Positions 7,461-21,238 of a stretch of DNA of 64,000 bases are shown in pieces. Below the pieces are notes generated by a model. The model was given only the letters and a program-made list of their open reading frames with translations. It had not been told where the DNA came from and did no database searches. The position numbers were made by a program, and so were the translations under genes. Source of the DNA: Geosiphon pyriformis uo1 (taxonomy: Eukaryota; Fungi; Glomeromycota); contig JAAOMT010000384.1 of the NCBI GenBank assembly GCA_016748015.1, forward strand, positions 62,001 through 126,000, read 5' to 3'. Positions within the stretch are counted from its first letter, which is position 1. Each line of letters begins with the position of its first letter.

Positions 7461-8783
7461 CTATATGCCATTAAATTTATTTTCAAACTCCTGGACGTTG
7501 ATATCTGAATTCTTTGCAAAATCATTTGGGGCGGACGAAATTAGGTTAACTTCTTTTGAATCAAGATTTGAACCACCTTTGTTTATGATTTCTACATAAT
7601 TAGAGGGAAAAACTCCCTGCTCCCCACTTCTCATCCGGCCACGCCACCAAAGAGAAGGTTGCCCCCATGAATCAGTCTTGCTTAAAATAGCGATAATATC
7701 ACCACGTTGGAAGCTCAATTCAACGGGGAACTCGCTAGTAAAATCATATAAAGCACGACAGAACTCAAGATTTTGAGGTGATACAGAAACTGGACTTTGT
7801 AAAGAGAGTTCACCGTTGTTTTCCGGTGGAAATTTATCATGAGTTCGTTGTGCTTCTCGACGTCGGGATAAAACTTGAATAAGTTTGTGCGTGAGAAATG
7901 GAACACCAAACACTGCGAGTATAAAAAACAGCAATGGCCGACGGGATTTTCGGCCATTTTCTTGAAAATGCTCAAAATTAATAGGTGTCAATTCATTGGG
8001 ATTAGCGGGAGGCGTTGTCCCCATGATTTTGTAAAAAATCTTACGAATCCATCGAACAACAGCAAATACACTCAATATTTGACCAAGATAATTTCGTAAA
8101 TTGCCGAATTGTTCGACGACTCCGACCATTGCCATAAATGATGAATGGGTAGCAAAGAAAGTTGATTCTAACATTGAAGCAAATCCACCAAAAGCATTCA
8201 CAACCGATTCAATCATATGGAATCCAGCAGATGTGCTAGCTTCCATTCGTTGAGTAAGTGAGATATCATCAGGGACTCCGGGTCCGGGAGCTCCAGGAGC
8301 TCCGTAAGTGTTGCCACCAAATCTACTATATGGAGAGGCACCATAGGATCCGTATGAGTTATATGAGCTATAGTTATTATAGCGATTGTATGGTGAATAT
8401 CCTGAAGAATATGATCCATATCGGTAAGGACTGTAGCCACTACCGTATGAATTGTAAGAATTAACCCCACCATATGAACTCATTCCAGTATACGGAGAAT
8501 GCCCATAAGAATTGTAACCTTATTGCATATATTAATTTATTTAGATGGTGTTCTTATATAAAGAGATAAATTTAAATAAAGAAATTCAGAGAGAACTAAA
8601 TTCAAACTCACTTCGGTTAACGTTAGGGTGACTCGATGTGGTGGTTGTGGGCCTTGCAGGAATTGCAGGGGGGGTTGCACCCTGCGTTAATCCCATCGTG
8701 TTCGATCGTGGCAGTGAGGCCTGTTGGGTGTTGAGACTGGCGGCACCTTTCGTCTTTTCCCAAGGTTTTGGTGGAGAAGGCAT
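7461..8783 (-). CDS. PEX13: Peroxin 13 (peroxisomal docking protein with SH3 domain); exons 8783-8612 and 8518-7461
   Basis: N-terminal MPSPPKPWE, YG-rich region, Peroxin-13_N segment ESVVNAFGGFASMLESTFFATHSSFMAMVGV, C-terminal SH3 (ALYDF...WWRG...GVFPSNYV). GT-AG intron 8611-8519 joins the exons in frame. Confidence 0.95.
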
Positions 8784-9111: not shown

Positions 9112-9867
9112 ATGGAGTATGAAGATGTTTTGACAAATCAACCAGTCGTTATCGACAATGTAAGTGAAAATATACATTTATAAAGCCTTCATTCGCAATC
9201 TTAACTGCTTCCTGGTTTTTCTTTCAGGGTTCTGGAGTCATCAAAGCCGGGTTTGCAGGGGACGATCTTCCAAAGTGTTTTTTCCCATCATAGTAAGTTA
9301 ATTTAATGTAAACTTTCAAAACTTTAAGGTGTCCTTAAATTAATGTTCTTTTTAATAGTGTTGGAAGACCTAAGCACGTTCGCATAATGGCGGGTGCTGT
9401 TGAGGGTGACGTTTTCATTGGACATAAGGCCCAAGAATTGCGTGGTCTTCTTAAAATCAAGTATCCAGTAGAACATGGTGTTGTGTCTGATTGGGATGAC
9501 ATGGAGCGTATCTGGAAATACATATACGAAGAAGAATTGAAGACCGCATCAGAAGAGGTATCTCTAATCCTCCCATTTACTTTTGGATCAAGAATTATGT
9601 TCTCCGGAAAATTTTAACATTTTGTGAGGTTTCAATCGACCCATAAATTGCGCAATAGCAGGAGCATTCCCAAATACAATTTAATAAAAATCTCACCTTC
9701 CTCTTTTAGCATCCAGTACTTTTGACTGAGGCTCCCATCAACCCAAGAGGAAATCGAGAACAAGCGGCTCAAATATTTTTTGAAACGTTCAATGTTCCGG
9801 CATTATTCACATCAATTCAGGCGGTTTTAAGTCTGTGAGTATTTCAAAAATTAATTAATTGGTTTCT

Positions 9868-11685: not shown

Positions 11686-13308
11686 TCAATCACTGTCACT
11701 TGTTGTATCACATTCGGTTTCACTTTCACTTGAAGTAGGGTTTTCTACTGAGGATCCAATTCCACTTAAAATTTTATTTTCATCAGTGGTTTCGGGCTGA
11801 GACTCATTTTCAATTGTAAATTCACTATCACTGTTGTATCTAATTTCATCTTCACTTGTGAATTCATTTTCGCGGGTAGAATCGTTTTCATTTCCACTTA
11901 TGCGTTCAGTGTCACTTACGATTTCATTGTCACTTGCATGCTGATTGCTACCCTCAATTTGAGGTTTGATTTGATTGTGCTCTCTTTTATTGATGATTTG
12001 AAAATCATTTGTGCTCAAGCTAGCTTTTTTAATGTTGGGAATTTTGGATTCGGTTTTTTTTTCTGCATGAACCTCTCGTTGGTCTATCTCAATATCACGA
12101 TCCAATGGCATCTGCTGGTAAACAAAAATTGTGGGAAATTCGATGATGGTTTTCTCTCTTAAGGAGTTGGAAAATGTGGAATTGGGGTTGAGAATGTAAT
12201 ATTTCGGATTGTTTGCCTATATAATAAAGGAATTGACGTCAAGGAAATTATTGTGACGAATTCGCTTTGAAGAAAATCTATAAGTAAATAAAAACTTGCT
12301 GGCTGTTTTTCTTTCTTCATTAAAAATATGTAATCCTCGAATGGAATAGCTTGAAGGCACCTTTTTTCGGTAATAGGTAGGAAAGTGAGTAAATCTTTTA
12401 AACCTTCTGCAAGCGTTTTGGTTTCTTTGCATCTAATTTCAATGTGATCAAAAAGATTAATGAGTTTATAATCCTAAAAATATCGAGAAGAATATCAAAA
12501 GGCTGAATACTTGTTTAAGAAGATTTTGCTGCTGAGCTCCGAGAAAATCCATTCGATTTGCCATGAAATCAAACCATCCTTACTGTAATTAAAAAATTTA
12601 CGGATTTACTATAAGTTATGAGAATTTGAAAGGTAGGATGATATTGAATAGCCTTACGATTTAAAGCTTGTTCGATTTAACAGCTTCCTCTTCATTCCAT
12701 ATGGCATTGAAATTAAATGAATGCCTCTGTTTCGTGCTTGTCTGGAAATTTGTTCCGAAAAAAACTGCCTTTTTGTTGTACTAGGGGTTAGCTGCTGCCT
12801 TATCGTGCGATTGTTAACATCAGCTACCCGAGCTAAACTTTCAAGATAGGTATAATCTGAGAAGAAGCCATAATGATTTAATATAAATTGAAATCGAATA
12901 ACAGCGAAAAAAAGATTCAATGATCAAACATAGTCAGAACTCACCCAACATCATTTCTTGATACCCGTATTGCTCACGAGAAATATAATGTGCTTTAGAT
13001 CGCATTCCATTACAATTCGCAGTCTTTTTATGCTGCTGGCAACAAGCAAGAGAGCAAGTCCGAAACCTGCACCGTGGGCATTTATATTTGGCGGTAACAT
13101 GACAGAGCTGACAGTTGGAGGAGCTTAAAGGTGGTGACCTTGCACGTTTTCTTTTTGTTGCGCGCTTAGTCGCTGCTGCTGGAGAATCTATTTTGCTATT
13201 TGATTGTTCTCTTTTAGTTTCTAAGCTGGATAAAGGTTCCTGAACCACAGAATCTGCCTCAACTTTACATTTCCCGAGAATAAAACCAAGAGGATCAAGA
13301 GACGACAT
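11686..13308 (-). CDS. BCD1: Box C/D snoRNA protein 1 (BCD1/ZNHIT6-like, zf-HIT), multi-exon
   Basis: zf-HIT CQLC...KYKCPRCRFRTCSLACCQQHK...CNG, followed by DYTYLE, RGIHLISMPYGMKR, ISWQIEWIF and an acidic tail. First ATG at 13308. Confidence 0.85.
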
Positions 13309-13596
13309 GGACCCGGAAGAAACCAAAAACGGGAGGGGCTAGAGTAAATTATTTGTTCAATCTGCTCAGTAAAAAGTTGCCTATCTGGTTTATATTATGA
13401 CACGATGTGACTAACCACTGGGAAATAATAGCAATTTTGTAATTCTTACTAATTATATTAAGAATTCAAGTTTTTTGTGTTTTAAAAAGTAAGCATATAT
13501 AAATTGAAAATAATATTTACAAAAAATAATATTTTATAAATTTTCCAAATAAATTAATCAGCCAGAATTTATTGCTTTCAAATGCACCTTGAAATT

Positions 13597-14878
13597 TTAT
13601 GAAGTGATAAAAACTTCTATTTTTGGTATTATAGGTGCTTCATGTTTAGATGGTATTTCTTCCCAATCTAGGCTCCATTCAGTTGGCATGATACCACCAA
13701 TGGGTCCTAAAACATGTACTGCCAATTCGTGAGCACAACATAATCGATCTGACCATTTGACGTTCGAGTTTAATGCTGTTTTTCCAAGATGTCCACCATA
13801 AGGATCCCAGCTTTCCCAATCTTCAAAACATCGTTTCAGTTTTTCGGGCCATCGATGACAAATTCGTTCTTGAATTCGTACCAATCGTTCGATTAATTTC
13901 ACAAGAAGAAAATGTGCCGTTGACTCATTACTCGTGTAATCAATATCTTCAAGATCCCGAAGTAAATCGGCAATCTCATAGCGTGGTTGCCACGCGTCTT
14001 TTGCTTCAATTGGAGGTGGACCTTGATCCCATCGGATTTTAGCTAGGTGTTGTAGTGGTGGGATAATATTTTGTGGGTCGTAGATAATTCGACCAAATGC
14101 ATAACATCTTAGAATTATTCCTGTTGTGTCATTCTTTATGTTGTGACAAATGTGTGATGGAGGATGAATGAAAATTTCAACCTATGCGAAAATTCCAGAA
14201 ATTGTTAATATTAATATCCTTAAGAATCTCATACAAATATTTATAATCACCTCTAATCCATCAATTACAATATTTCTCCGACATGTTCGCGGCGATTTAA
14301 TAAGAACATCAACATCCATATCGCTATTAGGAAAAAAATTAATCATGATTGCTGAAATTTTCGCGTCAGATTCTGTCATACGCGACGCGTCAAAGATTCT
14401 CCCTCAAAAATTATATCTACTCTAAATGACAATCATTTACCTAATAACTGATAAGGTGCTAAATTTAATAAAATAATCACCTATGTGGACCAGCATTTCC
14501 ATAAATTCTCGAGCCGTATGCGAACAAACCCAACAAATCATCACCAAACTCTTGTGTCAGTTTGACCAATAATTTGGCATAGATAGCGTCATTTGATTTT
14601 GAAACAACCGTCTTCTTCATACTGCTAGGTTTTTTCCAAAAATATGAAAGCCTAGTGACTATGTCTACCGCTATTCCTATTGAGGAAGCTCCGGTAAAGG
14701 CACTTGATTGTTTTGATTTTGGACCTTTTGCTTCGGACAACGTTGTTGCTGATGTTGTCGATGAGTTCGTCCCTGGGTGTGTCGGCGGTAAGTTGAAAAA
14801 ACGCATGAACGGTACAGCTGGGTAGTTTTTTGAGGTATTCTTCGGGTTCTTGAAACGGCTACCAAATATCGTATACAT
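13597..14878 (-). CDS. Pol-beta superfamily nucleotidyltransferase of bacterial (MNT/KNTase-like) type; exons 14878-14481, 14323-14251, 14181-13597 (351 aa)
   Basis: Splicing two GT-AG introns gives one open frame: LFAYGSRIYGNAGPHSDMDVDVLIK...IDGLEVEIFIHPP (hGS, DxD and a third acidic residue), then GRIIYDP, QGPPP, RYEIADLLRDLED and HVLGPIGG helical C-terminal domain. Confidence 0.85.

Positions 14879-15409: not shown

Positions 15410-21238
<5,829 letters not shown>

Follow-up and report, generated by a model that had tools for sequence, protein, structure and literature searches.

The stretch of DNA analysed here, hereafter the window, comprises 64,000 nucleotides of the genome assembly of the fungus Geosiphon pyriformis (contig JAAOMT010000384.1, positions 62,001 to 126,000). 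It carries on its minus strand, between 13597 and 14878, a gene of three exons and two introns that encodes a protein of 351 amino acids, a putative nucleotidyltransferase (NTase) of bacterial type. An initial annotation of the window had joined three open reading frame (ORF) fragments by two GT-AG introns into a single frame of this length, and both the reading of the minus strand and the deposited protein KAG9297369.1 bear this out. The gene is composed of the following parts:

14481..14878, minus strand: exon 1, codons 1-132 and two bases of codon 133, with the ATG at 14878 and the end ...GGT CCA CAT AG; it holds the N-terminal extension (approximately residues 1-92, 14878-14603), after which the NTase domain starts; its first helix and strand, with G122-S123, are encoded here
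14324..14480, minus strand: intron 1, 157 nt, GT...AG (gtgatt...aatag), phase 2, within codon Ser133
14251..14323, minus strand: exon 2, 73 nt, residues 133-157, with the metal-binding D134-x-D136 and the conserved basic RRN strand
14182..14250, minus strand: intron 2, 69 nt, GT...AG (gtgatt...catag), phase 0, between E157 and V158
13597..14181, minus strand: exon 3, residues 158-351 and the stop codon (VEIFIHPP...IEVFITS); it holds E159, the remainder of the NTase domain, the C-terminal helical (KNTase_C/HEPN-like) domain and the fungus-specific tail ...IIPKIEVFITS

The first base of exon 2, a C, completes Ser133 and is followed by DMDVDVLIKSPRTCRRNIVIDGLE. Intron 1 separates the GS motif (G122-S123, 14515-14510) from the DxD motif (D134-x-D136, 14322-14314), and the third carboxylate, E159 in VEIF, lies at 14178-14176, so that the claim of a catalytic signature split by the first intron and followed by a further acidic residue in VEIF was confirmed. 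R224, D229, D233, D236, K271 and K273 are carried by the part of exon 3 that encodes the C-terminal domain. Read-through of intron 1 leads to an immediate in-frame stop (AGG TGA) and read-through of intron 2 to an in-frame TAG at the end of the intron; the three pieces therefore code together only when spliced. KAG9297369.1 (P0085, "hypothetical protein G9A89_009453", Geosiphon pyriformis) is 351 amino acids long, is 100% identical to the translations of exon 1 and exon 3 (residues 1-132 and 158-351) and contains that of exon 2, which indicates that the public annotation uses the same splice model. This deposited protein was used as the query in full-length analyses, while the exons were searched separately.

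The gene is single-copy in the Geosiphon pyriformis genome (128.3 Mb, 792 contigs). It had been described as hidden, a description that does not hold, as the protein is already in GenBank under the above accession and its Rhizophagus orthologue has very probably been listed as a bacterial horizontal transfer (PMC5982333). Taken jointly, the identity of the gene, the class of its fold and the history of its transfer as set out below are considered highly probable, the locus being regarded as a functional nuclear gene present in Geosiphon pyriformis in a single copy.

Evidence on transcripts comes from relatives. One Geosiphon-labelled run gave zero coverage of the stretch, which is not evidence of silence. 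Contig L028 (JGI sample 3300004803, 1,356 nt) is intronless and contains a Paraglomus-type ORF of 303 codons that runs uninterrupted across both junctions, where the Paraglomus genome has gaps of 163 nt and 189 nt; with a 99-nt leader and a 3' untranslated region of about 345 nt, the contig is probably a transcript. The protein P0082 (A0A1D1YIX4) from an Anthurium transcriptome represents a second spliced orthologue, of Rhizophagus type. In the supplement of a published study, the Rhizophagus entry is given as 7.95 with rank 0.66 (PMC5982333), which are read as expression level and percentile.

Searched exon by exon, the gene matches nothing in Pfam and only one NCBIfam model at chance level, because its NTase domain is split over three exons. 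With full-length orthologues, Pfam Polbeta and NTP_transf_2 match the N-terminal domain below the gathering score of 26.9 bits (19.9 bits for the window protein and 26.4 for that of Gigaspora), and Pfam finds nothing in the C-terminal half. All three elements of the Pol-beta NTase core are present, namely hG[GS] as G122-S123, DxD as D134-x-D136 and the third carboxylate as E159. In an alignment of 26 sequences, no variation is seen at S70, D81 and D83 (P0006 numbering), and 96% have an acidic residue at the position of E106. Other conserved charges, in Geosiphon numbering, include the K/R of the RRN strand, the D of YDP, K271 and K273 in K.KR, and R224, D229, D233 and D236 in the helix RY..AD.LRD..D.

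The structure was modelled by AlphaFold on the Gigaspora orthologue using the 26-sequence alignment (mean pLDDT 87, core blocks mostly >93). Foldseek against PDB ranks ANT(4')-Ia/KNTase first (E 1.4e-9, TM-score 0.53-0.66), followed by an Exiguobacterium NTase-like protein, ANT(4')-IIb, HalB, LinB, AAD(9), ANT(6) and AadA. With VIA-align, this model can be superposed over its full length on the two-domain fold of KNTase (Z 15.8, 231 residues of a 252-253-residue chain, root-mean-square deviation (rmsd) 3.8); LinB (Z 13.7), ANT(4')-IIb (13.3), ANT(6)-Ib (11.8) and HalB (11.2) come next, MNT antitoxins fit the core only, and HEPN-like bundles fit the C-terminal domain only. A family profile run against PDB sequences retrieves HalB at E 1.9e-7 and KNTase at E 3.4e-7. 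KNTase has counterparts of the GS, DxD and VE strands in this alignment, its SDID being matched to the D134-x-D136 stretch of exon 2. The nearest Atlas clusters are prokaryotic NTP_transf_2 proteins, some of them with KNTase_C or Ant-IIb_sub-bd.

Eukaryotic NTase families gave only partial matches to MTPAP-like_central (E 0.14-0.19) and matches to gld-2 and Tailor at E 0.6-1.4, and none of the eukaryotic poly(A) polymerases (PAP), TUTases, CCA-adding enzymes and Pol X is found among the top 50 structural matches. The placement of the protein among Pol-beta NTases of bacterial KNTase-like type in the initial annotation, and its separation there from fungal PAP, TUTase, CCA-adding enzyme and Pol X, agree with these results. 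As judged from the model, it is a predicted two-domain Pol-beta NTase with the architecture of ANT(4')-Ia/KNTase, LinB and ANT(4')-IIb.

A homodimer of the Gigaspora orthologue was predicted with an ipSAE of 0.78, compared with 0.01 for the best control; at least 78% of the contacts agree between runs and pLDDT is at least 86. Among solved same-chain pairs 21 of 30 pass the mark used, and among single chains 0 of 23; a pass may reflect memory of solved like complexes, for example KNTase. In the predicted dimer, D180 and K220 (P0006 numbering) meet across the interface and the conserved EW..WE tail touches the NTase domain of the partner. This modelled arrangement would fit that of KNTase, an obligate homodimer whose subunits share the active site.

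In the proposed mechanism, the carboxylate triad would bind Mg2+ and a nucleoside triphosphate, and a nucleoside monophosphate, probably AMP, would be transferred to a hydroxyl of a small molecule at the dimer interface, with conserved residues of the C-terminal domain of one subunit reaching the partner in a symmetric homodimer. A metabolite of bacteria or plants, or an antibiotic, would thereby be tagged or made inactive. Small-molecule O-nucleotidylylation is put forward tentatively as the substrate class, a possibility that falls somewhat short of even chances. The isoelectric point was considered as an argument for a cationic substrate and was rejected, the value for the catalytic core (5.1-6.3) being too unspecific.

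Protein AMPylation, as carried out by MntA on HepT, by GlnE and by DrrA, would be compatible with the same gene and origin. MNT antitoxins, GlnE and DrrA are found among the structural matches (Z 7-10), NCBIfam MntA and PADLOC PDC-S09 give weak matches to the NTase core, the C-terminal domain is similar to HEPN-like bundles (Z 9-10.5), and the conserved disordered motif at the fungal N-terminus could serve as a docking site. However, the MNT matches span only a core of about 100 residues, while every match over the full length (231 residues, Z 13-16) is to an ANT or Lnu enzyme acting on small molecules, and no HEPN or other partner gene is conserved beside the bacterial homologues. AMPylation is thus regarded as unlikely. 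A search for defence systems with PADLOC (2023) gave PDC-S09 matches to the NTase core only.

Likewise, the same gene could encode a template-independent polymerase or signal synthase, either producing oligonucleotides in the manner of Hailong HalB or tailing RNA. HalB, which also consists of an NTase and a helical domain (Z 11.2), comes first both when PDB sequences are searched with the family profile (E 1.9e-7) and in the single-sequence search, and the Rhizophagus gene was grouped with RNA-processing proteins by Li et al. 2018 (PMC5982333). The fit to HalB is nevertheless poor (TM-score 0.3-0.43, rmsd 6.5-7) compared with that to KNTase (TM-score 0.53-0.66, rmsd 3.8), the genes beside the bacterial homologues include neither a HalA-like effector nor any other conserved neighbour, and neither an RNA-binding nor a PAP-associated domain was found, all of which makes such an activity improbable.

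Within small-molecule nucleotidylylation, a more specific role may be imagined, although it is an unlikely one as it stands. An antibiotic-type NTase, kept by all arbuscular mycorrhizal fungi and provided by the eukaryote with a targeting extension, might inactivate aminoglycoside- or lincosamide-like ribosome poisons of soil bacteria and thereby protect the bacterial-type ribosomes of mitochondria, or endobacteria. If true, this would be the first conserved eukaryotic member of the ANT/Lnu resistance class, and the trait would have become fixed before mycorrhizal fungi radiated.

The distribution of relatives was examined by an exhaustive HMMER search with exon 3 as the query against 1.84 billion representatives, which gave 63 proteins at E<=1e-3. 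Three of these are Glomeromycotina clusters, and the others are of about 240-255 amino acids, or fragments, with bacterial-type composition. Named eukaryotic members belong only to the Glomeromycotina, where they amount to 10 genera as counted. Besides Geosiphon, they are found in Rhizophagus irregularis, R. clarus, R. diaphanus, Glomus cerebriforme, Funneliformis geosporum, F. caledonium, Gigaspora rosea, Racocetra persica, R. fulgida, Entrophospora, Paraglomus occultum and P. brasilianum. No eukaryotic homologue outside the Glomeromycotina was found in the 1.84 billion representatives or in an index of 5.8 billion proteins. One UniRef entry is filed under a plant, A0A1D1YIX4 (P0082, 'Anthurium amnicola'), and falls in the cluster of at least 90% identity of the Rhizophagus irregularis orthologue; it is presumably a transcript of a mycorrhizal fungus from the transcriptome of a mycorrhizal root.

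Named bacterial members are Ktedonobacter racemifer (Krac_7754), K. robiniae and two Chloroflexia metagenome-assembled genomes (MAGs), and the archaeal member is a distant nanohaloarchaeal copy. The Geosiphon protein shares 42-46% identity with the nearest bacterial proteins over 232-251 residues (E 1e-65 to 1e-73), and the homology is collinear and covers the whole bacterial length, so that the similarity of the joined product is far beyond chance. Among 401 Chloroflexota genomes sampled, 12 match at E<=1e-20 and only 2 of them closely. A scan of genomes for relatives used an alignment of 7 sequences and two peptide patterns only, and the bacterial range is therefore under-sampled. No conserved partner gene or operon was seen beside the bacterial homologues in Ktedonobacter, a Chloroflexia MAG and metagenome contigs, the neighbours being unrelated housekeeping genes that offer no hint as to function. 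The homologue in a Candidatus Nanohaloarchaea MAG (L012:6001-6642) shows 22% identity and has one in-frame TAG within the match. A bacterial homologue of 414 amino acids (P0011, L030:8001-9245, JGI 3300027902) has a tandem-duplicated C-terminal helical domain, visible as two matched stretches in HMMER.

The initial annotation had also drawn attention to the bacterial endosymbionts of this lineage. Nothing ties the gene to them, as the named bacterial relatives are free-living Chloroflexota; no named relative comes from Nostoc, the Mollicutes-related endobacteria or Glomeribacter, whose genomes were not searched directly.

An unrooted tree was computed from 64 rows under LG+C20+F+G4. In it, all eight sequences from fungi group together (100/100), and their clade lies inside a set of 25 rows (96/84) together with Ktedonobacter, the Chloroflexia MAGs and soil metagenome proteins. 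A focused tree of 37 rows, to which the closest metagenome proteins were added, gives the same picture, with the fungal clade arising out of a polytomy. Within the fungal clade, Geosiphon, Paraglomus, Entrophospora, the Gigasporaceae and the Glomeraceae separate roughly by order. The direction of transfer is taken to be from bacteria to fungi because prokaryotic diversity is far wider and the gene is absent from other eukaryotes.

The gene thus occurs only in the Glomeromycotina among eukaryotes, is nested in a bacterial set and is integrated in the host genome, as indicated by its introns, eukaryotic flanks and ameliorated composition. Distribution and phylogeny accordingly back the earlier suggestion of a bacterial-type gene acquired by horizontal transfer. 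They do not back a Geosiphon-specific event, the transfer being instead ancient and subphylum-wide. A vertically inherited clade spread across fungi or other eukaryotes, which would have spoken against the suggestion, was not observed; vertical inheritance is seen within the Glomeromycotina only.

In the absence of any transfer into fungi, an ancient eukaryotic gene would have been lost everywhere outside the Glomeromycotina, or the gene would have moved from fungi to bacteria. The unrooted tree and the long stem branch of the fungi (0.79-1.0 changes per site) leave some room for these histories. They are, however, very improbable, given that no eukaryotic homologue is found beyond the Glomeromycotina in either of the two protein collections, that the prokaryotic family, with its archaeal member, is much more diverse than the fungal one, that the fungal sequences form one tight clade within a supported bacterial subset, and that introns and terminal extensions are found in the fungal copies only.

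The fungal copies share further characteristics that bear on the history after transfer from bacteria. Geosiphon, Rhizophagus, Gigaspora, Entrophospora and Paraglomus agree in the position and phase (AG|GT) of intron 1. For intron 2, the site after IDGLE is common to Geosiphon, Rhizophagus, Gigaspora and Paraglomus, while the Entrophospora model deviates and appears to use a wrong donor for this intron. A genomic Logan contig, L029 (ERR4245141, 1,031 nt), has both introns at the same positions and an exon 3 that is 83% identical at the amino acid level; its source is an unsampled relative of Geosiphon. Among fungi, exon 3 shows 0.13-0.23 nonsynonymous (pN) compared with 0.58-0.79 synonymous (pS) differences per site, with synonymous sites near saturation, and dN/dS is about 0.08-0.21 where computable. 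The shared introns and the low dN/dS point to one old transfer followed by purifying selection.

Several of the gene models show irregularities of their own. The model of Entrophospora sp. SA101 (P0005; L006:8271-8572, 9152-9299) omits the conserved IDGLEV through an earlier GT donor and has a doubtful extra C-terminal exon after IIPKLE. In that of Paraglomus brasilianum (P0008; L005:8497-8685), residues 112-145 are garbled relative to P. occultum (P0086) and contig L028, probably as a result of a mis-set intron 2 acceptor or an assembly frameshift. The Gigaspora rosea orthologue (L004:8001-9521) has two extra introns, after residues 56 and 208, in addition to the shared two, and the Racocetra fulgida model, at 462 amino acids, looks fused to something else.

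All fungal orthologues carry an N-terminal extension of 44-97 residues that is basic, Ser/Thr-rich and predicted to be disordered. The first 32 or so residues, with the motif M-S/Y-P/T-I-F-G...K-Y...M-R-F, are conserved across all Glomeromycotina orthologues, as is the C-terminal tail I-I-P-K-I-E-V-F-I-S/T in the fungal proteins. The extension of Geosiphon is the longest, and includes an insertion of about 45 residues (window 14603-14770, minus strand; …SAFTGASSIGIAVDIVTRLSYFWKKPSSMKK…) that is absent from all other orthologues. A hidden intron in exon 1 that would excise this insertion was considered and rejected, since the sole plausible GT...AG pair (79 nt, by eye) shifts the frame into a stop. 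Neither a donor gene nor a second copy was found for the N-terminal extension in the Geosiphon genome; speculatively, it may represent a targeting or docking signal.

The whole is best accounted for by a single ancient event, in which the common ancestor of the Glomeromycotina received a stand-alone gene from bacteria, the donor most likely being a Chloroflexota-like soil bacterium. Once integrated, the gene would have acquired its two spliceosomal introns, the basic and Ser/Thr-rich extension with its conserved motif at the N-terminus and the short conserved tail at the C-terminus; it would also have adopted the base composition of the host and been retained under purifying selection in every sampled arbuscular mycorrhizal order.

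The surroundings of the gene in the window are eukaryotic, as identified from ORFs and Pfam:

12934-13326, minus strand: zf-HIT protein gene
16738-20988, minus strand: several exons of tubulin-folding cofactor D (TBCD)
7461-8483, minus strand: peroxin-13 gene (Pex13; Peroxin-13_N + SH3)

The first two are the flanking genes named in the initial annotation, and Pfam matches on the neighbouring ORFs verify them. Exon GC is 0.39-0.42 and GC at third codon positions (GC3) 0.24-0.40, similar to the neighbour genes, while the introns are richer in AT (GC 0.23-0.31). Introns, eukaryotic flanking genes and host-like GC and GC3 support the view, also expressed earlier, of a domesticated gene and not of contamination. 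Around the orthologues in Rhizophagus, Gigaspora, Paraglomus and Entrophospora, no gene within 8 kb is shared with the Geosiphon locus, so that synteny is uninformative. A bacterial contaminant in the assembly or a pseudogene in decay, for which only the bacterial affinity of the protein and the lack of Geosiphon RNA data could be cited, has a negligible probability in view of the two spliceosomal introns with positions common across the subphylum, the place inside a contig among the Pex13, zf-HIT and TBCD genes, the host-like GC and GC3, the intact frame, the dN/dS of about 0.1-0.2 and the spliced orthologue transcripts.

Taken together, the account of an ancient bacterial gene encoding a KNTase-like NTase, with the mechanism as a marked conjecture, is held to be probable as a whole. 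Some points weigh against it. On the side of the protein, the models of fold and dimer are those of the Gigaspora orthologue (about 68% identical) and not of the window protein; identity to solved ANTs is just 10-14%; all curated NCBIfam ANT models score 11-19 bits compared with cut-offs of 193-595; and Pfam KNTase_C (PF07827) has no match at E<=1. In addition, HalB, an oligonucleotide-signal synthase, scores level with KNTase in the profile search, and a shared fold does not fix the acceptor. On the side of the gene, splicing in Geosiphon is deduced from orthologues and the in-frame fit. With respect to the transfer, the tree has no root, the sister group of the fungal clade receives 83/23 in the 64-row tree and the clade arises from a polytomy in the 37-row tree, and a Chloroflexota donor rests on five taxonomically placed members, the other bacterial relatives being mostly metagenome proteins.

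An earlier report touches on this gene in Rhizophagus irregularis. Li et al. 2018 (PMC5982333) listed a "nucleotidyltransferase", ESA03915.1, with no conserved domain and WP_007910780.1 as its best match, and placed it with genes that have homologues in bacteria but none in fungi. Its BLAST distribution alone led the authors to classify it as recently transferred to R. irregularis or its near relatives, and no tree, structure or intron analysis was given (PMC5982333). The Rhizophagus orthologue of the Geosiphon gene (P0004; UniRef U9T6Y1) is also named 'Nucleotidyltransferase' and has no Pfam domain at threshold. The common name, the missing domain call and the accession WP_007910780.1, which presumably lies within the block of K. 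racemifer, make it very probable that ESA03915.1 is this orthologue. No paper was found on the structure, the Glomeromycotina-wide spread or the function of the gene. What is new in comparison with the earlier work is that the transfer is old and pan-Glomeromycotina, and the subphylum-wide spread corrects the reading of a recent, Rhizophagus-specific event.

The finding, a nucleotidyltransferase of ANT(4')/Lnu-like type that fungi acquired horizontally, is solid but incremental. The gene is one of few bacterial genes that are common to every arbuscular mycorrhizal lineage and have been strongly constrained since before the group diversified, and it is presumably useful to an obligate symbiont of soil and roots living amid antibiotic-producing bacteria. 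It also provides a dated example of the gain of introns and terminal extensions after transfer from a bacterium to a fungus. Its ANT(4')/Lnu-like fold class makes the function directly testable with standard acceptor panels.

Among known systems, the MNT antitoxin of the type VII MntA/HepT pair is different. MNT proteins are minimal, with about 100-140 amino acids, and are encoded beside a HEPN toxin gene, whereas the protein described here has a fused C-terminal helical domain and scores 13-19 bits with NCBIfam MntA, well below the cut-off of 60. Hailong HalB (PDB 9DBH) is similar in the order of an NTase and then a helical domain and is the best profile match in PDB; it differs in its poor superposition (rmsd 6.5-7) and in being paired with HalA, while no conserved partner is found here; the product of HalB is oligodeoxyadenylate. 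The family in Chloroflexota and fungi is without a curated full-length model and without a characterised member. Krac_7754 (EFH86455.1 / WP_169460928.1) and the other Chloroflexota hypothetical proteins are true homologues with the same conserved residues, but they lack introns and N- and C-terminal extensions and have GC-rich coding sequences. LinB/Lnu(B) (PDB 3JYY) and ANT(4')-IIb (PDB 4EBJ) are encoded by stand-alone genes and resemble the protein in fold and size over 214-225 aligned residues; no sequence-level family membership was found, and the comparison is one of fold. Finally, ANT(4')-Ia/KNTase (PDB 1KNY, 6UN8, 6NMK) is the best structural match. Identity is 10-14%, the score with the NCBIfam ANT(4')-I model NF033061 (11.6 bits, cut-off 350) lies outside the sequence family, and the fungal N-terminal extension (44-97 residues) and C-terminal tail are absent from KNTase. 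The two nevertheless have in common an NTase domain followed by a helical bundle, a size of about 250 residues, and aligned strands for GS, DxD/E and the third carboxylate; a homodimer in which residues of the C-terminal domain reach the partner is predicted by modelling.

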